Numbered from the stretch's first letter, positions 9,151 through 34,565 are shown. The stretch: 64,000 nucleotides of DNA from Amoebophrya sp. A120 (GCA_905178155.1 CAJINV010000013.1:1988281-2052280); one strand, 5' to 3'. Notes: generated by a model from the sequence alone, not told the origin. Translations and numbers: made by a program.

Positions 9151-12038
9151 ATATAACTTCGCCTTCACTGCGCAATTCACCCATAGGATGAAGGCGCGCG
9201 CAACTGAACAGAAGCGCAAGTGTTGTTGAGACAGAGCGCGCCTCAGACCGAATCGCACGACGCCCTGCGACGGTCACACTGGCAGCAAACAGAAAACCCG
9301 GCCGGCACAGCAAGCTACAGGGAGCAAGCCACGCAAGCCAGGCTCTCGAACCCCACAGAGCCACGTCCCGGACGTAGAGGTGGGCCAAGCCGTGGGACAC
9401 GACATGGGCCGCCGGACGCGTGGCTTGCGGGGGGTGCCGCAGGGTACCTTGCAACCAAGTCAAAGACGGGCGGGTGGGTGGGAGAAAAAACGCCAAGCCG
9501 AGGCAAGCCAAGGCGAGGTGAAGATTCAGGATAGAGGACAAAGACCCAGCCGAAGCTGGTCGGCGACGGGCAGCCAGCCCGCCGCCGAAGTGTGCAACCC
9601 TCTTGCTTGCTCTCTCAGGCGAAGGCGAACTGATATAAACGCTACGCGTGACATATAACTTCGCCTTCACTGCGCAATTCACCCATAGGATGAAGGCGCG
9701 CGCAACTGAACAGAAGCGCAAGTGTTGTTGAGACAGAGCGCGCCTCAGACCGAATCGCACGACGCCCTGCGACGGTCACACTGGCAGCAAACAGAAAACC
9801 CGGCCGGCACAGCAAGCTACAGGGAGCAAGCCACGCAAGCCAGGCTCTCGAACCCCACAGAGCCACGTCCCGGACGTAGAGGAGGGCCAAGCCGTGGGAC
9901 ACGACATGGGCCGCCGGACGCGTTCCCCAGATGTGACTAAATGCCGGGGCGGCCCGGAGCTGTCGGGGACAGAGAGCCGGGCGCGCGGGGCTGCGGAGCT
10001 AGGTAGCGAAATCGTGGAACAGTGCCGGCGCGTAATCCCTGCAGCGAAGTGAGGGGACCGGGCGAAGCTGTGGGGGTTTGCTCCCAGGTGTGTCTAGTGA
10101 ATGTCTGCCCGGGAAAGTTCCACGGGCTTGTTACCAGGCGAAGACAGCGCAAAGCGCGGCGGCGTGATGCTTCAGCCCGAAGCATCCAGGATTTTGTTTC
10201 ATCAGATCGGCAAAGCGCTCCCAGGCACGCTGGATGAATCGAACAACTACAGAGAAGTCCGAAACAGGAGAAGAAGCAATCAAGACTGCGCGAAGACGGA
10301 CAGCTGATTACCCCTCGCCCCCACACCAACCGCTGAACCCCTTCGACTGTGCTCACTGCCTTAACAATGAACACCGGCGGACCGACGCCGAGGAGCGAAG
10401 GACGGAGTTGCAATGCCGGTAGGCAACGCAACTCAGCTCTCCTTCCGAGTCAGCACTCCTGATACCCCTGCGCGAGAGGTCTGGGCACGTCGTGATGACA
10501 CAACCAAACGTCAACGCAAAAGCTGCAACGAGGAAGTCGCGAACCGCGAACGGGCGCAACAACGACGTCGCGAACGCACGACCCCACCCCAACACCCGCA
10601 GGCGGCTTCATCGAAGTCACACACGCGGACGGAGGAGCACCTATATCAACCGGCGCCCCCGGTATGCGACCCACTGTCTACAGACCGCCGCCACCTGCGG
10701 GACTGTGGGGTTGCGCGTCCAGGGTGCTGGGCGATGTGGTGTGGGTGCCGGCCATCTGTGTTGATGTGCTGTGTTGTTCGCGAACCCATCGGGCACGCGG
10801 GTGTCTTTGTATTTGTCAGCCCATCGGGCCGCCCCTGCGAACGGCAGGGGCGAAAAGGTGGGCGCGGGGGTGCCCTGTGGTGCGGCCGTTTGTTGCTTGC
10901 CGTTTTTTTTTTTTTATACTAGAACAACTATAAACCATAATAAAAGAGTCGAAGATCAGCCCTGTTTGTAGCTTGCCGTTTGTAGTTGGTGAGGCGCTGT
11001 GTAGTTCGCTCCGGCTTATGATCACTGTAGTGCGATCTTATACCGGCTAACGCCAATGTTAGACTGGGCCCGGCCCATGGCAATTGCCAAGGGCCTTGCG
11101 GGCAATGCCCTAGGAAGCCAGTAGCGTCGTGCGTTTCTGATTTCTGTCAGCGTGAAACGCAGTGCCCCCGCTCTCGCGGTTTCACCGCTGACAGGCGAGT
11201 GGCCCACCACTGCTGCTCCTCTGCTGCGTCGCAGCTCACATCGGAGAGCAGAATCATGAGACACCCGCGGCACGCAGAGCGGCAGGCCGCAGCAAGGGCT
11301 GCGCTGTTTACCGTTGCGTGTTGCCGAAAGCGCCCTCAGCCAAAGGCCGAGATGACGCCGGACATGTGCCCTGGACGGCGTGAAGAACCACGCTGCCACA
11401 TCGTGGCCAGCCCGATCCTTCCTACGCTCCCCCACCAGTGGCGCCCGCGAGAACCGCGAACGTGTCATCGACATGTGCGTAAGTACCACTGCAGGAGAAT
11501 AGCCTGGAAGATAGTTGAAGAACGCAACATCTCTGCACTGCGAGATGTGCGCAACAGCCCTTCCCACCGGGACATCATCCCCTGTCAGGATAATGCCTCG
11601 GCGCTCGGCAGGGCCGAGCTACGTGCACACGGCAAAGCGCACGCCGTTTGTTCTGACCTGCCCATGGCTCGGACAGCTCAATGGCAACGGAACCACCGGA
11701 GCTCTTTCCCTGCCGCACACTGCATTGATCCACGCTAAGGATTGGCAGTGCCGGAAACGACAAGGCGGAACTGCCAAGCAGAACCAGAGCGAAGGCCTGA
11801 GGCGTACAAGTACGCCTCGCTTTCTCATCGAGACACTCCTCCGTCAAATATCCACCCTCCGAGAACCGAAGGGCCGAAAAAACGCCAAGCCGAGGCAAGC
11901 CAAGGCGAGGTGAAGATTCAGGATAGAGGACAAAGACCCAGCCGAAGCTGGTCGGCGACGGGCAGCCAGCCCGCCGCCGAAGTGTGCAACCCTCTTGCTT
12001 GCTCAGGCGAACTGATATAAACGCTACGCGTGACATAT
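9151..12038 (+). mobile_element. Split-direct-repeat (A-B-A...B) element of the tyrosine-recombinase retrotransposon type, coding region decayed
   Basis: A1 9151-9421 = A2 9653-9923; B1 9484-9656 ~ B2 11876-12038. The internal B1/A2 junction equals the two element ends joined at ATAT. Confidence 0.85.
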
Positions 12039-23667: not shown

Positions 23668-24457
23668 TTCGTGTGTGCGTACAAGATCGACGTCTTCGTT
23701 CGGGTTATAGAAGTGCTTGTGGGCAGCGGTCTTGATGGTGGAGGAGTCAAGAACGTCGGAAGAAAATTCGTGATCATTCGCACCGCTTTATGGACTTCTC
23801 ACAAGTTACATTGATAGCTGGCGTTACATGAAGATTTGTGATGCAAAAGTAATGTTCTCAGCAGCCACGGCCACCCGATCAATCACTACTTCGCATGCCA
23901 AAATATCTCAGTTCTAAACAGGGTGGAAATCTGTTCCAAATTTGTGACGCAAGGCGCGGCGTAAACTTGTCTCTTAACTTTTACTTGTGCTGTTCTTGCC
24001 TCACAAACCCATGTACTAACGGCTATCAATGTAACGTTTGAGAACTCCATACGCTTTTCATCGCGCCACCGCTCCTGCCGTTGGTAGTAGTTCCGCCACC
24101 ATGATCATTCGCTGCTGTCGTGGTGTCACCCCGTGGGCTGCCTTGTTCGTATTGTGAGGAAAAGTCTCCCCACCCCATATTTAATTATGCAAACTCCAAG
24201 GAAGAGCCCGGTGGCTTATGTCGGCTGCGCTCCCGAAGGCAAACGTAGTGCCAGCCCCGAGGGAGGTAAATGGGGGTGGGAGGTGGGCAGACAATCCGAT
24301 CTTTTCAGGAGAAGAATGCAAACACGAAAACATAGCGGAACATCGACGCTGCACTCTTTCCGATTGGTCGGTAGGCTCTTGTTGTTTTTTGGAGTTCACT
24401 GCACAAGATCTGCACAAAGAATCCATTAAGATTTCGTCATATCAGCGGCAAAGTTAT

Positions 24458-25543
24458 CTAGTGCTGTAGGTCAACAAAGTTGACACCCGAATACTTACCT
24501 ACAACGGGATGAAGGCCCGAGAGGCGGGAGTAGAGCAAAAACATAAAAGGACTCGACCAGCGACACTGTAAGCATATGACATCTGGCGGGACATTATTGT
24601 AGCGCATGTGCAACGTCGCACCAATGCGCAGCGAGTGGCAATTTGTCTCAGAATCAGGATAATGGTGCCGAAATAGGTGCGGAAAATCAATTTCGATTTC
24701 GGTGTTAATTTTTTCGAGAAATTGGCGATAGGAATGCAAGCGCGTCTCTCTAGCGTCTTTGCAGGTGCAACGCACTGAGACGCCTTGAATATTTGTCGAC
24801 TTGGCAAGCCCCTGCTGGCACGCAGGACGAAAATCCGCCGTGATATGTGTGTCAGTATAGGTGACTAGAGTGGATTTATTTATTTGCGCCAACTCTCCTC
24901 GCCGAAGCGCGAAGACGAAGGCAAGCAAAAAAATAGCTCTCGCAGTGACATCCTGCACTGCGACGACTTGGCTAAGTTGAGTAGGTATTTTTTGCGTGTG
25001 TGTCATAAGTGTCGTTTTTTGTCTTAAACGCGATAGGCCCGCGCGTAATTCTTGCTCTTCGACTTCGTGCAGTTCGATCTGGTTGGACTTTTTGGCAAAA
25101 GTCAGAACTGTGCTGATGTCATCGTCTAAAGTTTTGCACCGACACTGAATCGCAACACTAACGAAAATCATGCGTTTTTTGTAGTCAAGTGGGAAAGGCT
25201 TCACATTTGCAGCAGAAGTTATTTCTTCGCATTTCTTAATTCGGGAGGTCGATGTAGATACAGTGGACGGCTTGACTTGTTGCAATTCATTTGCATAAGT
25301 CAAGGCGGCTCTTAGCAGATTTGGGCTACTGGCGACCATAATCGCCATGCTTTGTTGCTTAGAAGAGCGGGTCTTTGTCTGCACACTAGAACTGGGCAAG
25401 TTTGTAAAAAATTCATCATCCACAGCTTCAGAATTCCGATGCGGAGATCGCTCACGTGCAGGGGCATTAGCAGTACTACTGCTGCCGGCGCCTGACGCAG
25501 GTGCAAGAGAATTCTCTTGAAGATATAAGTCTCTTCGCCGCAT
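24458..25543 (-). CDS. Tyrosine recombinase (DIRS/Ngaro/PAT-like)
   Basis: 361 aa with FALRRGEL (R), HSLRIGAT (HxxR), CRWSS (W) and LLYSR (Y). Confidence 0.92.
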   Translation of the reverse strand: MRRRDLYLQENSLAPASGAGSSSTANAPARERSPHRNSEAVDDEFFTNLPSSSVQTKTRSSKQQSMAIMVASSPNLLRAALTYANELQQVKPSTVSTSTSRIKKCEEITSAANVKPFPLDYKKRMIFVSVAIQCRCKTLDDDISTVLTFAKKSNQIELHEVEEQELRAGLSRLRQKTTLMTHTQKIPTQLSQVVAVQDVTARAIFLLAFVFALRRGELAQINKSTLVTYTDTHITADFRPACQQGLAKSTNIQGVSVRCTCKDARETRLHSYRQFLEKINTEIEIDFPHLFRHHYPDSETNCHSLRIGATLHMRYNNVPPDVICLQCRWSSPFMFLLYSRLSGLHPVVGKYSGVNFVDLQH

Positions 25544-25552
25544 GGTAGTCGT

Positions 25553-26386
25553 TTACTTGTTGGGGAGCGGAATAGTGCCAATAGTGCCGGGCGGGGCCCA
25601 CTTTTTGTGCTGTTTAATATTTGCTACAGCACTCGCGAAAGTGACACCGCTCAAATTGATCGAGAACTGTTTTGCCTGGTCACGAAAGTCCTTTTCCGTA
25701 GGAATAGTATGCTTGCGCAAGCAGGACGGGTTGTTGCAAGCACCCCGCCAAAGGTCAAAGCAATACTGGTCCTGGATGGCGACTTTCTTCTGCGGGGGGC
25801 CACCTCCAGCCGAGTGGTCACCAACCCGTTTGTTAGACGAGGAAGACGATGACGCAGCTGCGCCGATTTGCTGCTTGAGATCTTCCGCGAGCTGCGCAGT
25901 GGGCTGAAACAACGCCACACGGTCGAAGTGCGTGAAAAAATCGACCTCAAACCAGTTCCGACGGCGGTCCTTGTACTTCAAGGCGGGGGCTTTCGGCTCC
26001 CGCTTTTTGCACTCTGCAGCCAGAGGCCAGACCTTGGAGAGTATATAAGCAGCCGCCCGGGGAGATAAGCGATCGACCTTGGAGTAGGCCTTGTTGTACT
26101 GCGTAGCTACGATAACGTCCTCACCGAGTAACGCCTGCAAAAAGGTCCCCCGTTTTTCTTTCGTTAAGAAAATAGTCGACAGCTGTTCGATCTCGTGACT
26201 TTTGAGCAGGTTGCTCACTGCCTTGCGCTCGTCCTTATCTGGGGCAGTGAACGAGTCGACAATTTTGTCGTTGTATTCTTCCAGCTTTTGTTCAAGCTCT
26301 TGCTTAGTACTAGCTCGCTTGTCGGCGAGCTTATCCAGAAGCCCCCCGAACTCTTCTAGCTGTGCGTCGTCCAGAGGGGGCGACAT
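25553..26386 (-). CDS. Gag-like protein with a CCCH zinc finger
   Basis: 277 aa; N-terminal coiled coil; YCFDLWRGACNNPSCLRKH; ends 10 nt upstream of the YR start. Confidence 0.7.
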   Translation of the reverse strand: MSPPLDDAQLEEFGGLLDKLADKRASTKQELEQKLEEYNDKIVDSFTAPDKDERKAVSNLLKSHEIEQLSTIFLTKEKRGTFLQALLGEDVIVATQYNKAYSKVDRLSPRAAAYILSKVWPLAAECKKREPKAPALKYKDRRRNWFEVDFFTHFDRVALFQPTAQLAEDLKQQIGAAASSSSSSNKRVGDHSAGGGPPQKKVAIQDQYCFDLWRGACNNPSCLRKHTIPTEKDFRDQAKQFSINLSGVTFASAVANIKQHKKWAPPGTIGTIPLPNK

Positions 26387-28109
26387 TGTGGGGCTTTACG
26401 GGGTTTTTTTCAGCACTAAGGACCTGCGCAGGCTGTATTTCGTATGGGCAGAATGTATATGGGGATACGCAGGATCAGTATGTTATGAGATAGCAATTAA
26501 AATAAGACCGAGGAATTGCAGCATGCGCATGCGATATCACTCAGTTGTCAAACAAGTTGACCGACGTAGCAGACAGCGGGTGGGCGGGTGGGCAAAACAG
26601 AAACACATCTGCTCGCTCGCGTGCCTGCTGCCCGTATACATCTATTTTCTTTGTCATAATCAAATGGCTCACGCACCAAGCCCGAGCCAAACTCACAGGC
26701 TCGCATGACTCTTCCTTGCTGCGTACGCATTTTAAATTTTAATTATGCAAACTCCAAGGAAGAGCCCGGTGGCTTATGTCGGCTGCGCTCCCGAAGGCAA
26801 ACATAGTGCCAGCCCCGAGCCAACGTGGCAGAGCCGCGACCCGATGAGAGCCCCGCGCTACGGGCGGATGAACATCGGGATGGGGGAGGGCAAGCCGACA
26901 CAGCGCCAACGTGGCGATGCCACCGGAAAGTGGACCTACAGCAGAAGCGCCCTAAGCGACGGAGGGCAAAATTTTAGGCGCATGACGCGCATGCTTGCAT
27001 GACGCTAAAATCGCATGACGCGGTGTGTGCATGACGCAGAAGTTATTGGAGGCCAATGCTGGCCATGAAGTGACCATGCGGTCAGGAGCCATGCGGCTCG
27101 GTAGCTGCGGGGGTGGGGTCGCTAAGCCCATGCACGCAAACAAAACAGAAACGCATCTGCTCGCTCGCGTGCCCGCTGCCCGTATACATCTACTTTCTTT
27201 GTCATAATCAAATGGCTCACGCACCAAGCCCGAGCCAAACTCACAGGCTCGCATGACTCTTCCTTGCTGCGTACGCATTTCAAAAGGGAAATTTGTGTTG
27301 TTGATCTGCGAATATAAGAAAAAGAAATCCATCTGTAAATGCAAAAACAAAGAGAATAAAGCGAGGGCGCAGCTACGTGGCATGATCGATGTAGTATGCG
27401 GTTTCTATGGTTGGTCAAGCAACAGAGAAAACTTCTGTCATGCCAAGCAGCTAGTCATCCCCTCCAGAAACTGGCTTAGCTGAGATTCTACTTCCTCGCT
27501 TTGAAAAATCATGCTACTCACACAAATCTCTGATGTTTGAATGTGGTGATGGGGGCACTTTTCATCTTGGTAGTTCGTCTGGTCGCTCGTGTACATCGAG
27601 TCCACCCATCGTACAAAGCGACGAAAAACCGCGTGGTAAGCGGGAGTGATGGGCCAACCTCTTCACATATCAAAGTGAAAAGCGCCACCTCTTCGCTCCT
27701 CACCTACATCGAAGTTGCAAAGCTCTAGCATGGCCTCTGCGGAGCTAGCGCGCGAAACAGATTTTCGCTATCATTTTTCCTCGTTGAAAATTATCTGTTG
27801 TGATGCTGCTTCACACGAGTTGCAAATGTAAATGTTCCCATTAGGAACTTTTACAGTAACAAATAAAGCTTTATTCGTCAAGTTGGGAACTTTATTTCAC
27901 TTTGATATGACAGCTCCGTGTGCTGATGTTGCGACGTTACTGGCGGTGGATGCCGTCGAGATATCCGAGGAGGAGCCCGCCGAGGTGGCACGGTCGTAGT
28001 ACGTGTGCGGCTCGCGAACAAGACAGAATCGCAACAAAAAACTGTTTCTTGTCGTGATATTCGGGTCCTCTTGCCCGAGAGAAATGTGTGTAAGAAAGCA
28101 AAGGGCACT

Positions 28110-28874: not shown

Positions 28875-30222
28875 TATTGGTAACCAAATGCGTGCGCGAA
28901 AATCTATCCAGCGCGAAGACCCGCCAACCTTTTTCTAACATCGTCCGCGGCCCTAAAGGGCCGCGGACAACTACTGTCGCCCGCGGCGGCCCGCAGGCTC
29001 CTGCGATAAGCATTGAAGGCGAAATCCGGTCTGCTATTTCGCAGCGGGGCATTCTTTCTAGCCCCCTGCATGACAAACTGGCCACCTGGCCAGGAAGATA
29101 TGTGGCCGGGGGGGCCAAGCCCCCCCCGGACCCCCCCATCCACTTTCGCAGCGGGGCATCCTTTCTGGCCCCCTGCATGACAAACTGGCCACCTGGCCAG
29201 GAAGATATGCGGGTCATCGGGGGCTCCCGGATTCGCGTTCAAAGCTTATCGCAGGAGCCTGCGGGCCGCCGCGGGCTCCACCACTTCCCCGCGGCCCTAA
29301 AGGGCCGCGGACAACTACTGTCGCCCGCGGCGGCCCGCAGGCTCCTGCGATAAGCATTGAAGGCGAAATCCGGTCTGCTATTTCGCAGCGGGGCATACTT
29401 TCTAGCCCCCTGCATGACAAACTGGCCACCTGGCCAGGAAGACCCCCCATCCACTTTCGCAGCGGGGCATCCTTTCTGGCCCCCTGCATGACAAACTGGC
29501 CACCTGGCCAGGAAGATATGTGGGTCATATGACAGCCCTTTTGGGCCACCCAAATCGGGCATTTCCAAGCGGGCGGAGGCTTCAGTTTGCTACCCTCAGA
29601 GAGGTCGAAAAGCGTGGGGGGTGAACACACCTCCGCAGGCTTGATGGCTGCTTTTTTTCTTTCAATCACGGCGGTATGGGCCGTGTGACAATTTCAAAAA
29701 CCACTTTTGAGCGGCAATTTCTAAGCGGCCCCTGCTTTTTCACAAAAAAGCGCCATTTTCAATTTCCAAGCGGCTTCCGGGGACTGCAGAAAATCGGTAA
29801 ATTTTGTCGGCCGCTTGTAGGCTGCGAAAAATTGCATTTTTTCAGCTCTTTTTTTCAATTTTCAAGCGGCTGGAGCTGCCCGGAGGTGACGCATTTTCCG
29901 CTATAAAACGCATCACACCACCGGCCCTTGCCGAAAATGCCACAATCTTTTTTCAGATTCAGACCGGGCGGAGCTGCAAAACTGCTATTTTTTACCCTTT
30001 TCCCACTTGGTTTGGTAATTGCTGTTTTGGTTGCTTTCGGGAAAATTCCCACAAATTCTGCCCGATCCGCTTTCTGAAGGCAAAACACACTTGACAATGC
30101 CCGACTTTGCCAGTGGTTGCATACCCCCGAGTTCCTCCCATATGGTAACGGCAAAGCCTTCGCGCTGCGTTTGCGATGGATGAGCATCTCGCAAAGAGCG
30201 CTTGCGCACGCTTTGGTTACCA
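28875..30222. mobile_element. Non-coding TIR/foldback-like element with modular internal repeats
   Basis: IR tggtaaccaaa(t)gcgtgcgc at 28878 and 30201-30222; ~110-bp module at 28945 and 29289 with an inverted part at 29242; ccccctgcatgacaaactggccacctggccaggaaga four times. Confidence 0.6.
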
Positions 30223-31203: not shown

Positions 31204-33273
31204 TCATTCGCAACAAAGTTCTACTCGGGACTTCTCAACGTTTCTGTAGTACCCCCCAAGGACTGAGCGGAGGGAATTATCTTGGAATGATCGGAGCGCT
31301 GTGTGTGCCGCTTTCGAAATGCGCCACACCTCCGAGTTGTACAAAGCTATACTGAGAGTGAGCGCACGATACAACTCAGCCTTCAAGTGGAGAGGCACAG
31401 AGCCATCCCTCCATATCGGGCCGAGTTGTTTCACCACCCCACTGGCCATCCCGCATCTGCGGGCGGTTTCTGCGTCTGTGTCGCCCCTGCTACTGATTTC
31501 GGTGCCGAGGTATTTGAAAGCCCCGACCGACTCGACCGGTTTGCCCATGTGCCGCACCTGCTTGCAGTCGCTTGCCGCCGCAGGCCTTGCCTGCCGTTTG
31601 TTCTTTTGTTCTGCGATTCTGCTCAGGCGGAGCGTTCTGAGTTCTGCGATTGTTTTGCTCGGGCGACAGAAGCCACTCGTTGAGTGGAAGTGCAGTGCTG
31701 TTGCGTCTGGCAGCACGTCCCCACACTTTTCGCAAACAAACTCGCTCTCTTCGTCTAGAACGTGCTGAACCCGGCCCAGTTTTGTAAGTCGTATGCTTTC
31801 GCCAGTGTGTGTCGTTGCCCACCCGCTGGGCTTCTCGGCTATGACTGTGAGTCCCTGCGCGGGGTCATCCCACACCACTGCGCGCGTGGGCGCCAGGTCG
31901 CCGAGGCCTTGCAGCGAGAGGCGCTGGACCTCCCGCCGCCATTCCTCGCTCCAGTCTACGCCGCTCCATTCTATCATCCATCCTTCTTCTTTTTCGCATA
32001 TGCACCGCTCCATTTTTGCGCCCGGGTTTTTCTTGATTTGTGCGTCTTGGTTCACCATCATTATTTTTGTCTTCTTCGCGTTGAGGTCTAGGCCGATGAA
32101 CCGGCACGCGCTCGCCAACTCCATGAGCGCGAAGTCCATCGCCTCCACGCTCGTGTCTTTGAGCGCCAGATCATCGACGTAGCCGAGCCACGCCAGCGCC
32201 CAGGCGTGCGCCTGCTCGGTGGTCCACTTTAGTTCTTCCGCCATTGTTGCCGCGAATTGCTTCATTGCCCAGTCCACACAGAGCGCAAACAGGAGGGGGC
32301 TCAACCCGCTCCCCTGCCGTATCCCGCTCTTTTGCTTAAAGGGCTTCGCGTGCTTGTCGTCGCCGAGGCGAATGATTACTTCTGCTTTTTCTTCGTACAT
32401 TTCCCGCACTACTCTGCAGAGGTTCTCAGGCATCCCTTGTTTTTTCAGAATTTGAAACATTACCGACCAGGACAATGAGTCAAACGCTTTCTGAAAGTCT
32501 ACGAACGCGTAGAGCGCCTTTTTTCCCTGCCTGTTGTTCCGTTCCAGGTCCCGGAGCAGTTCAAAAACTGCATGCCTGCACGACAGCCCCGCCCTGCATC
32601 CTTTTTGCCGCTTGTCCATCGCTTTATTGCTATTGGCGTCTTCTTCTATTCGTCTCAGTATTACTAGCCCCGCCAATTTTTCGCCTAACGACATCAGCGC
32701 GATCGGCCTCCAGTTTTTTGGATCGACCATGGCGCCGCCTTTGTGGAGCATGGCGACCACCGCCTTGCCCCACTCTGGAGGAATTCCGTCCCCCTTGAAG
32801 ATCCGGCGCACTAGTGCGATCATGATCGCCCGAACGGTCGGACAATCTCGCGCAAATTCCGCCGGTATCGGCCCCGCAAAGGCCTTGCCCCGCTTCAGCT
32901 CTCTGAGCGCGGCGTCTACTTCTTCGTGCGAAGGGATCGCGGCGACCCCCTCACACCAAACGCTTTCCGGCCCTTCTTTCTGCAGCTCTTCTTCGCATCT
33001 TTTCCAAGTTTTGGTCTGCTGCATCGGCTCCGGCGCTTCTGGCCGGTCTGTTCCGAATATGCCCCCCCAGAAATCCGTCCACGACTTGTCTTCTGTTCCC
33101 GGGAGGTCCTGCGGCCGCTTCTTCCCGCGCCCCGCCAACTGCCTAGCCGTCTCGTAGACCACTTTGGCGCTGCTTGTGTCGTCGGCCTTTTTTAGTGTTT
33201 CGATTTTCTGCGCTACCCACGTGTTTTTGTCTTGCCGCATCAGCCTATTAATTTCCCGGGTGATGTGGGTCAC
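31204..33273 (-). pseudogene. LINE reverse transcriptase domain with a zinc-finger-containing insertion
   Basis: WRPIALMS, FVDFQKAFDSL, GIRQGSGLSPLLF, YVDD, LNAKKTKIM, FKYLG. Confidence 0.95.
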
Positions 33274-33332
33274 CCTTTAGCCCTTGAGTTTCTTCGCCCT
33301 CCGTTCCTCTATTTTGCGCCATGTCTCTTCAC

Positions 33333-34565
33333 TTATCCATGGTTTTCTGGGGCCCTCAGGGGGAAGGTTTTTGCGAAGCTCTTCCAGAGTCGCCGTCGCG
33401 CTCGATTTTCTCCCACCAGTCGGTCCGCCGCGCTGGTGCCGCCCTCTTCTATGTCCGCAAGCACGGCCGGATTGTAAATTTTTCCCAGCTTTTCGCTTGC
33501 TAGCTCGGCCTGGTGTTTACTTCTTACAACTTTCGGCGGTATTTTTGCCGCTTTCGGTTTCTTTACTGCGCCGAGCTTCATCTCCATCACGACCATGCTG
33601 TGGTCGCTTGTTGTTAACGTGTTGCGAACTGCTTTGTATCCCTGAAAGAGACCGCGGTCGCGGTGTGTCACCAGAAAGCGGTCGCATTCCCGCCGCTTTC
33701 TGCCTTCGCTGGTCCAGTTCCCCTCAAAAGTGTAGCGGTGCCGCCACTGTTTCTTGTGCAGGCTGGAAATGTCTACTAGCTGCTGCGCTGCTGCGAGCCC
33801 GTGCAGCCTAGTTCTGTTGTCGGACTCGAGTGCGAGTCCGCTAGTTAGCCCGCATGGGCCGACGACAAACGGGAGCCCGGAGCTAATTAGCTCCGTCTCC
33901 GCGCTTCCTAGTTCGCAACTGTGGTCCCCCCCGACCACTACTATGTCGCGCTTGCTGTGCTGCTGCATCTCTGTTCGCGGCATGTTATAGCACTCGCCTC
34001 TCTTTTCTGGGCTGCTGACGTTGGTGGGGGCGTAGACGCTGTAGAAATGCACGGCCTTGCCGTGCGTTGCTTTGATGCTTACCCGCATCAGTCTGCTGTG
34101 CTGCGTCCCTGTTGTGCCTTCTATCTTGATCCCCGGGCGCACCAGGATTACTGTCCCCCCTACTGCGGGGCCCGCTGTGCTGCTTGTTGCGCCCCCACCA
34201 TACGCCTTGTACCCTCCAGGCCACGTCTCGCCGACCATCCCCGTGCGAATACGTGTCTCCTGGAGCAGGACTATATCCAGGTCGTTTCTTCCTACGTCTT
34301 CCATCAGCATTGCTACTTCGTGGGGCCAGCGGTCCCGGAACTCGTCCCGCTGTCCTAGTGTTCTGACGTTGAAGGTGCCTACTTTGAGTCTTCGCCCTGT
34401 CACCTTGCTCCTCCAGTCTCGGGAGGGAGCGCCCCTACCGGCGCTTGGTGTCCCGCGTGTGCCGGCGCACCTTGCGCTGCTGCCTCCACCAGGGACCACC
34501 CCTGGCGGGGGAGCTGCTGGCGTGACTGCGTCGTGTGACGAGGACGCCTCATGGCCCACCCCCAT
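33333..34565 (-). pseudogene. LINE apurinic-like endonuclease domain
   Basis: VGTFNVRTL, LLQETR, SVYAPT, VGGDH, CDRFLV, TSDHSMV. Confidence 0.92.

Follow-up and report, generated by a model that had tools for sequence, protein, structure and literature searches.

A reverse transcriptase-less tyrosine recombinase element with split direct repeats in Amoebophrya sp. A120

A stretch of 64,000 nt from the genome of Amoebophrya sp. A120 (GCA_905178155.1, CAJINV010000013.1:1988281-2052280; hereafter the window) contains, on its minus strand at 24180-27280/27284, a mobile element of 3,101-3,105 bp with two genes and split direct repeats. One gene encodes a predicted Cre-like tyrosine recombinase, the other (open reading frame 1, ORF1) encodes a protein with a CCCH zinc finger, and no reverse transcriptase (RT) is present. 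Sequence comparison indicates that the element belongs to a recombinase + CCCH gene-pair family which is RT-less and has members across Amoebophrya and in related marine sequences. This family of the Syndiniales is undescribed, and the literature searched on Amoebophrya transposons and introners makes no mention of such recombinase elements. As a member of this RT-less family, the element is Crypton-like in gene content and in its likely mechanism. The reading that we favour, at about an even chance, is a DNA element of Crypton-like kind whose circular form integrates at AAA.

Tyrosine-recombinase elements include DNA elements (Crypton, TEC) and retroelements (DIRS, PAT, Ngaro, VIPER), whose mutual origin is open (PMC4157794, PMC6681497). 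The element described here joins the gene content of a DNA element with the split repeats and the gag-then-recombinase order of a retroelement, and may link the DNA and RNA classes of recombinase elements.

Results

Organization of the element

In coding orientation the element reads flank, X1, int (320 nt), Y1, ATTTA, X2, a 206-nt leader, ORF1, recombinase, 196 nt, Y2, flank (Table 1, which also gives the plus-strand names A and B of the repeats). Comparison with five related copies delimited the conserved termini at 24180 and 27280, and the repeat search went 4 nt beyond, to 27284. X1 opens with AAATGCGTACGCAGCAAGG, and the family terminus conserved at 27280 is AAATGCRTACGC. The 3' end of Y2 is also kept in four related loci (L030, L031, L038 and L007). 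Of 82 aligned positions, 1 differs between A1 (24180-24261) and A2 (26738-26819), and of 144, 4 differ between B1 (26593-26736) and B2 (27141-27284). On the plus strand, the internal junction was read as B1...GCATTT + TAAAT + TTTAATTATG...A2, and TTT, which is AAA in coding orientation, stands at both element termini. X2 runs into a CCCACCC-rich stretch, and a spacer of 9 nt (ACGACTACC) separates ORF1 from the recombinase. Because the non-coding parts are only 196, 206 and 320 nt long, neither RT nor RNase H can fit in the element. The full-length element was found as one copy in a search of the genome.

A first-pass annotation of the window had already described much of this anatomy. Its end at 27280 proved to be the terminus conserved across the family, and our measurements agree with its near-identical A and B repeats, its internal B1-taaat-A2 copy of the end-to-end junction, its TTT at both termini and its lack of room for RT and RNase H. 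The split repeats mirror the layout of PAT, Ngaro and VIPER, with the B1-A2 junction 5' of the ORFs, where it had placed it. The two intact ORFs (277 aa, CCCH; 361 aa, recombinase) stand as well, but the gap between them is 9 nt and not 10. A repeat divergence of 2.2% and the single copy make it doubtful that the element is young, as this annotation had it.

Table 1. Features of the element, its host gene and the gapped group-3 paralogues (window positions unless a genome locus is given)
Feature	Position	Strand	Basis or description
Whole element	24180..27284	-	repeat search; termini versus 5 related copies
X1, 5' terminal repeat in coding orientation (= B2)	27141..27284	-	97% identity to 26593-26736
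int, 320-nt non-coding stretch, X1 to Y1	26820..27140	-	alignment of four X-int-Y units
Y1, internal copy of the 3' terminal repeat (= A2)	26738..26819	-	99% identity to 24180-24261
5-nt spacer between Y1 and X2, ATTTA in coding orientation	26733..26737	-	internal junction
X2, internal copy of the 5' terminal repeat (= B1), directly 5' of the ORF1 leader	26593..26736	-	repeat search
ORF1, 277 aa	25553..26386	-	predicted long N-terminal helix, CCCH zinc finger, basic tail
Tyrosine recombinase ORF, 361 aa	24458..25543	-	R214 K248 H303 R306 W329 Y338
Y2, 3' terminal repeat (= A1), ending ...GCATAATTAAA	24180..24261	-	repeat search
Conserved inverted-repeat/structured block, 3' part of int + Y1	26738..26925	-	covariation, folding
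Host intron holding the element	24145..27572	-	3,428 nt, non-GT/AG, 6-nt direct repeat GTTCGT at both borders
Host exon 3' of the intron	24052..24144	-	same run X3 contig, which then leaves the window sequence
Gapped group-3 loci (G000)	C15:1351829-1353277, C6:2658122-2659571, C2:8040994-8042434, C2:12695831-12697217, C4:11507093-11508588		

The tyrosine recombinase

All of the catalytic motifs of a tyrosine recombinase are there in the 361-aa protein: R214 (ALRRGE), K248, H303-x-x-R306 (HSLRIG), W329 (CRW) and Y338 (LLYSR). When 15 paralogues from the same genome were aligned, the ALR-x-x-E, K, HS-x-RIG, RW and Y columns were invariant or nearly so. The probability of a 361-codon open frame by chance is about 3e-8.

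Direct searches with the recombinase gave no Pfam match, no recombinase among the matches of the PDB sequence searches, and no match in a word-based protein search. In the word-based protein search the family profile matched three bacterial integrases only, reaching PF00589 at E 9e-5, and 3 of the 66 nearest external relatives match PF00589. An AlphaFold2 model was built on the 15-paralogue alignment (predicted local distance difference test, pLDDT, 60), and its top Foldseek matches were Cre, XerH and lambda Int only. VIA-align superposed it on Cre with a Z of 12.0 and a root-mean-square deviation of 5.1 over 233 residues, spanning 93-348 and both domains. The motifs and the model together indicate that the protein is a Cre-like tyrosine recombinase.

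ORF1 and its pairing with the recombinase

The zinc finger of ORF1, C-x7-C-x4-C-x3-H, covers aa 209-226 (window 25709-25762). Pfam gave a weak Torus/CCCH match, an atlas search matched unnamed clusters only, and a six-frame genome search at E<=0.01 returned no second match to ORF1. Its fold model was poor (pLDDT 38), too weak to judge a capsid-like fold. The name 'Gag' used in the first-pass annotation is thus a putative label, which the position of ORF1 and its CCCH finger, and nothing else, suggest.

A CCCH ORF of 270-310 aa lies after the recombinase at four loci of the group-2 recombinases (see below) and at locus L054. The group-2 CCCH ORFs align with ORF1 at 17-27% identity by way of a conserved C-terminal block, GPP-x-K...C-x-x-L-x-x-G-x-C...C...H...P. 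In one gene model of Amoebophrya AT5.2 (P0014) the recombinase and the CCCH protein are fused. Since CCCH ORFs adjoin recombinases at these five places and the two are fused in P0014, sequence comparison indicates that the pairing is old. The gene order is permuted, with CCCH then recombinase in the element and recombinase then CCCH at the other loci, which is what one would expect of a circle opened at different positions.

The distant pair at L054 (L054:1614-3172; G000:C13:335000-344999) is identical to the A120 protein CAD7966023.1. A 224-nt direct repeat at this locus is 100% identical; one copy adjoins the recombinase on its 5' side, and the second lies 1.3 kb beyond it in the 5' direction. 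A CCCACCC-rich stretch comes after the repeat, as it does after X2 of the element; a second repeat pair was not found at L054.

Absence of reverse transcriptase from the family

The recombinase profile has 46 matches in the genome, including about 25 close paralogues. The nearest is a 5'-truncated copy at C3:9942270 (51% identity). The recombinases of group 2 (31-36% identity) have ORFs of 355-440 aa; those of group 3 (about 20% identity), of which at least 12 copies are intact, have ORFs of some 490 aa. We compared 38 recombinase loci with the 106 RVT_1 matches in the genome. No RVT_1 match lies within 60 kb of the roughly 25 close paralogues, bar that of a LINE 7.6 kb from the element itself, and the genome searches for the full element and for its start motif found no copy that shares the ends of the element and carries RT. 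The only true recombinase-RT neighbourhood is at C5:8550902, whose recombinase belongs to a distant set of about 500-530 aa.

Outside this genome the profile found 413 proteins, with the best matches in Amoebophrya AT5.2, Ameob2, A25 and A120 and in marine metagenomes. RVT_1 occurs in 0 of the 66 nearest external cluster representatives and CCCH fingers in 2 of them; GCR1_C and DUF3504 are neither in the proteins of the element nor in these 66 relatives. RT-fused proteins (P0078, P0102) enter the external matches only from E 6e-10 onwards. A scan of metagenome contigs found no relatives.

A quick maximum-likelihood tree of the recombinases of this genome and of external matches, unrooted and with several weak nodes, paired the recombinase of the element with the C3 copy (support 100). 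These two group with group 2 and the Amoebophrya and metagenome matches (support 89), and with group 3 added they make up a 42-row RT-less set (SH-aLRT 86). The RT-linked recombinases of the genome fall in a sister clade, and the RT-fused P0102 also lies outside the 42-row set. Such an unrooted tree fits a loss of RT as well as its absence from the start.

These results bear on whether the element is a one-off internal deletion of an RT-bearing DIRS/Ngaro-type element. A general likeness of the repeat layout is all that speaks for such a deletion, whereas no RT remnants are present, the ORFs are intact and 9 nt apart, the genome has no full-length relative and the whole clade is without RT; this explanation is close to refuted. 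The first-pass annotation had named full-length RT-bearing relatives as the observation that would make this copy such a one-off deletion, and no copy with the same ends and RT exists in the genome. An RT-only partner with the same ends would in its view have supported its interpretation, and none was found. The same holds for many copies of the same structure: the genome yielded a single coding copy, a single truncated one and about 4-10 derivatives without coding sequence.

Two RT candidates were considered and rejected. The RT at window 31204-33273 does not belong to the element: it is part of a LINE with its own APE endonuclease ORF. This LINE-type retrotransposon occupies window 31204-34565 on the minus strand, with the APE ORF at 33333-34565 (Exo_endo_phos) followed by the RT ORF (RVT_1 E 2e-26). 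The second candidate was a 1,444-aa ORF beside a group-2 recombinase (L035:3597-7928; G000:C3:8432000-8441999), which lies 167 nt 3' of the recombinase in the same orientation. RT was not detected in it; its only match was to a retroviral-type DDE integrase, at the C-terminus (PFV integrase E 5e-9, Integrase_H2C2). Integrase-bearing DNA-like elements have been reported for A120 (PMC12130899), and the ORF may represent such an element or a recombinase + DDE pairing.

Five dispersed group-3 paralogues carry a gap of 100-170 nt (Table 1), at profile position ~404 in four and ~388 in that on C4. A shared intron may account for the gap and would argue for DNA-level copying.

Non-coding relatives and conserved termini

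The ends of the element recur at a few loci with 61-86% identity. The repeats within one copy are 97-100% identical. L031 (C3:8085569-8086292) has the structure X1-int-Y1X2-9 nt-Y2 and no ORF; its repeats are 100% identical, and its junction is seamless (CATAATC-AAAA-TGCG), the ATTTA spacer being missing. L038 and L007 consist of X-int-Y and nothing else, L006 has been reduced to a remnant of about 170 nt, and L030 retains the 3' part of the recombinase plus Y. The five related loci begin with AAATGCRTACGCAGCAAGG and end with ...ATAAYTAAA, their flanks are unrelated, and none of the five has a target duplication. Inverted 10-mers, CAAGGAAGAG and CTCTTCCTTG, lie about 14-17 nt inside each end. 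The X start motif has 6 exact matches at 4 loci and 7 near matches in the 115-Mb genome, and no RT was found near any of them.

Alignment of the four X-int-Y units showed that the flanks of int are conserved, while its middle is variable and holds a lineage-specific array of a short motif. The array consists of 4 x GCGTCATGC at a spacing of about 16 nt in the element (27035, 27019, 27003, 26986), of 6 x CACGCTTGTGAC in L007 and of 2 x CTTTGCCCTTA in L031.

The layout of the element could be accidental, if a short unit and a coding unit had inserted independently, 4-5 nt apart, at an A/T-rich site. The extra ATTTA at the junction would then fit leftover target sequence (...AAA-ATTT-AAA...), and solo short units do exist (L038, L007). 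However, L031 has the same unit order at another locus, with a seamless junction and 100% identical repeats, and an unrelated multi-copy family, one member of which lies at window 9151-12004, has the same A1-B1A2-cargo-B2 order. We regard an accidental layout as very improbable.

The element at window 9151-12004 is a second split-repeat element, with P1 at 9151-9421, Q1 at 9484-9612, P2 at 9653-9923 and Q2 at 11876-12004. Its repeats are 100% identical, and about 1.95 kb without a long ORF lies between P2 and Q2. Its two ends are ATAACTTCGCC...GCGTGACAT, and AT(AT) is common to both at the junction. The family is found at more than 20 loci with 70-98% identity, and four loci also have tandem arrays of its P-Q unit, which recurs there every 495 bp or so. 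Comparison of the ends ruled out that this family shares them with the recombinase element.

The truncated nearest relative of the element, in L030 (L030:5200-10000; G000:C3:9940200-9945000), is flanked by two copies of a large repeat about 3.1 kb apart, which contains 22-bp satellite arrays.

Integration model and the question of an RNA stage

For a Crypton-like DNA element, the recombinase would join a circular DNA, closed at Y-end/AAA/X-start, to AAA in an A/T-rich target. Site-specific recombination at AAA would leave no target duplication. The integrated copy would be a head-to-tail pair, with the short X1-int-Y1 first and the coding X2-ORF1-recombinase-Y2 second, and the internal Y1·X2 would amount to a complete circle junction kept within the element. 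If this complete internal site recombined with one or the other end, one of the two units could be set free as a circle, with its partner staying in place. We favour DNA over complementary DNA (cDNA) as the origin of the circle, given that deep branches and other species alike lack RT.

Several observations weigh against this model. To our knowledge, split direct repeats occur only in recombinase retrotransposons, where they are explained by reverse transcription. The structured block in int and Y1 (Table 1) has 49 pairs, 95.9% of them paired over four copies of 61-74% identity (slid controls, 40-49%), with compensatory changes at 6 pairs. The sense strand folds at -61.9 versus -51.1 kcal/mol for the antisense strand, and is better in the consensus and in every single sequence; 21 G·U cells were counted versus 3 A·C. 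The z-score, from four sequences only, is about -3 on either strand, and an Rfam search gave no match. CCCH fingers usually bind RNA, and together with the sense-biased structure the finger of ORF1 hints at an RNA stage. The repeats are 97-100% alike within a copy and 61-85% between copies, a contrast which fits repeats that are remade in each copying round, as in the PAT/Ngaro model (PMC6681497). It also needs explaining how the pair is carried as one unit, because a circle with two junctions should resolve into two circles, and L031 and the unrelated 9151-12004 family share this unit order. Neither an empty site, a circle junction nor a polymorphism was found; the element is single-copy, and its activity at present is thus putative.

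Some of these observations would fit a semi-autonomous recombinase retroelement, in which an X1-Y2 transcript would be copied into cDNA by an RT acting in trans and integrated by the element's own recombinase. The internal Y1·X2 would be the bridging template, as in PAT, Ngaro and VIPER, and ORF1 would be a Gag-like RNA-binding protein. The A1-B1A2-B2 logic is retained, in mirror order; the repeats are near-identical within copies and diverged between them; the conserved structure of int + Y1 is sense-biased; and ORF1 has its CCCH finger. X-int-Y units resemble SIRE, the A2-B2 derivative of VIPER, whose own order is gag-YR-RT (YR, tyrosine recombinase; PMC6681497). Many RTs exist in the genome, one of them beside the distantly related recombinase at C5:8550902. 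Against this stand the lack of any RT-bearing element with the same ends and the position of the RT-linked recombinases in a different clade. The RT-less state also extends over branches of 20-35% identity and to other Amoebophrya species, which is long for a dependent lineage that keeps two intact genes, and the group-2 relatives are without split repeats of 30 nt or more. We consider RT supply in trans, the main rival of the DNA model, rather unlikely. A living intermediate between Crypton and DIRS types, whose split repeats and sense-structured leader act through an RNA copy with borrowed RT, is in our judgement unlikely. If it were true, the replication logic of split repeats would exist independently of an RT encoded by the element.

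The host intron

An introner-type intron of a gene on the minus strand holds the element, whose orientation agrees with that of the gene. In run X3, presumably RNA, a contig of depth 27 links 24144 directly with 27573 and leaves out 3,428 nt. Imperfect inverted repeats lie beside the GTTCGT border repeats of the intron (Table 1). Non-GT/AG borders, short direct repeats and nearby inverted repeats characterize the introner-type introns of Amoebophrya (PMC7789003). About 323 nt of the older intron surround the element. The intron flank is unique in the genome, and therefore no paralogous empty site is available. A second, low-depth X3 contig of 166 nt lies inside the recombinase ORF and may come from pre-mRNA.

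This location also bears on whether the element has become immobile, as a relic, or domesticated, as a gene pair with a host function, its repeats being left from an old insertion. Its place in an intron in the orientation of the host gene would fit such a pair, as would the single copy and the 2.2% divergence of the repeats; many diverged intact paralogues are annotated as genes, and relatives are found in Amoebophrya transcriptomes. In contrast, the two ORFs, the terminal motifs at both ends and every catalytic residue are intact, the 100% identical repeats of L031 suggest that the lineage was active recently, and a place within an introner-type intron is where a nested insertion would lie. 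A relic or domesticated pair seems quite improbable to us.

Comparison with known systems

Cryptons, compared here by description only, share with the element a tyrosine recombinase as the only enzyme, the lack of RT, a low copy number and the possibility of an accessory gene. The ends of both are without terminal inverted repeats or classical target duplication, and integration of a circle at a short common sequence is presumed for both. Descriptions of Cryptons include neither long terminal repeats nor split direct ones (PMC13465315), whereas the element has repeats of 82 nt and 144 nt plus the shared AAA. The partner of its recombinase is a CCCH zinc-finger protein, and it has no GCR1_C or DUF3504.

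VIPER and its derivative SIRE, which are recombinase retrotransposons of kinetoplastids, resemble the element in the order of a gag-like ORF then the recombinase, in the split direct repeats and in a short A-spacer-B derivative (SIRE), which is similar to X-int-Y (PMC6681497). VIPER differs in its third ORF with RT/RNase H and in its B1-A2-B2 cluster at the 3' end, while the element has no RT and its cluster is at the 5' end. Ngaro and PAT-like elements, of the order DIRS, have the A1...B1A2...B2 split direct repeats, a recombinase and no target duplication in common with the element. Both code for RT/RNase H, and PAT for a methyltransferase too; the internal repeats are placed 3' of or between the pol domains (PMC4157794); in comparison the element is mirrored and RT-less. 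It has the split repeats of the order DIRS, but no RT/RNase H, and in the quick, unrooted tree its recombinase does not cluster with RT-linked recombinases.

The retroelement at C5:8550902 is in the same genome, and its recombinase is in the sister clade within a 68-row group (support 99). It differs in having a recombinase of about 530 aa, after which come large ORFs that match RVT_1 weakly (24 bits), and it has no shared ends and no CCCH ORF. With an RT-linked sister clade in the same genome, the family offers a concrete system in which to ask whether split repeats need reverse transcription, and whether RT was gained or lost.

Other features of the window

Inverted-repeat arms of 42 nt, 81% complementary, are located at 23789-23830 and 24010-24051. 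The X3 exon of 24052-24144 starts immediately after the second arm, so that 23789-24051 is probably a neighbouring introner-type intron. A direct repeat of 154 nt (28945-29098 and 29289-29442) is 99% identical and contains a sub-repeat of 86 nt, which is present in four copies over 28945-29528.

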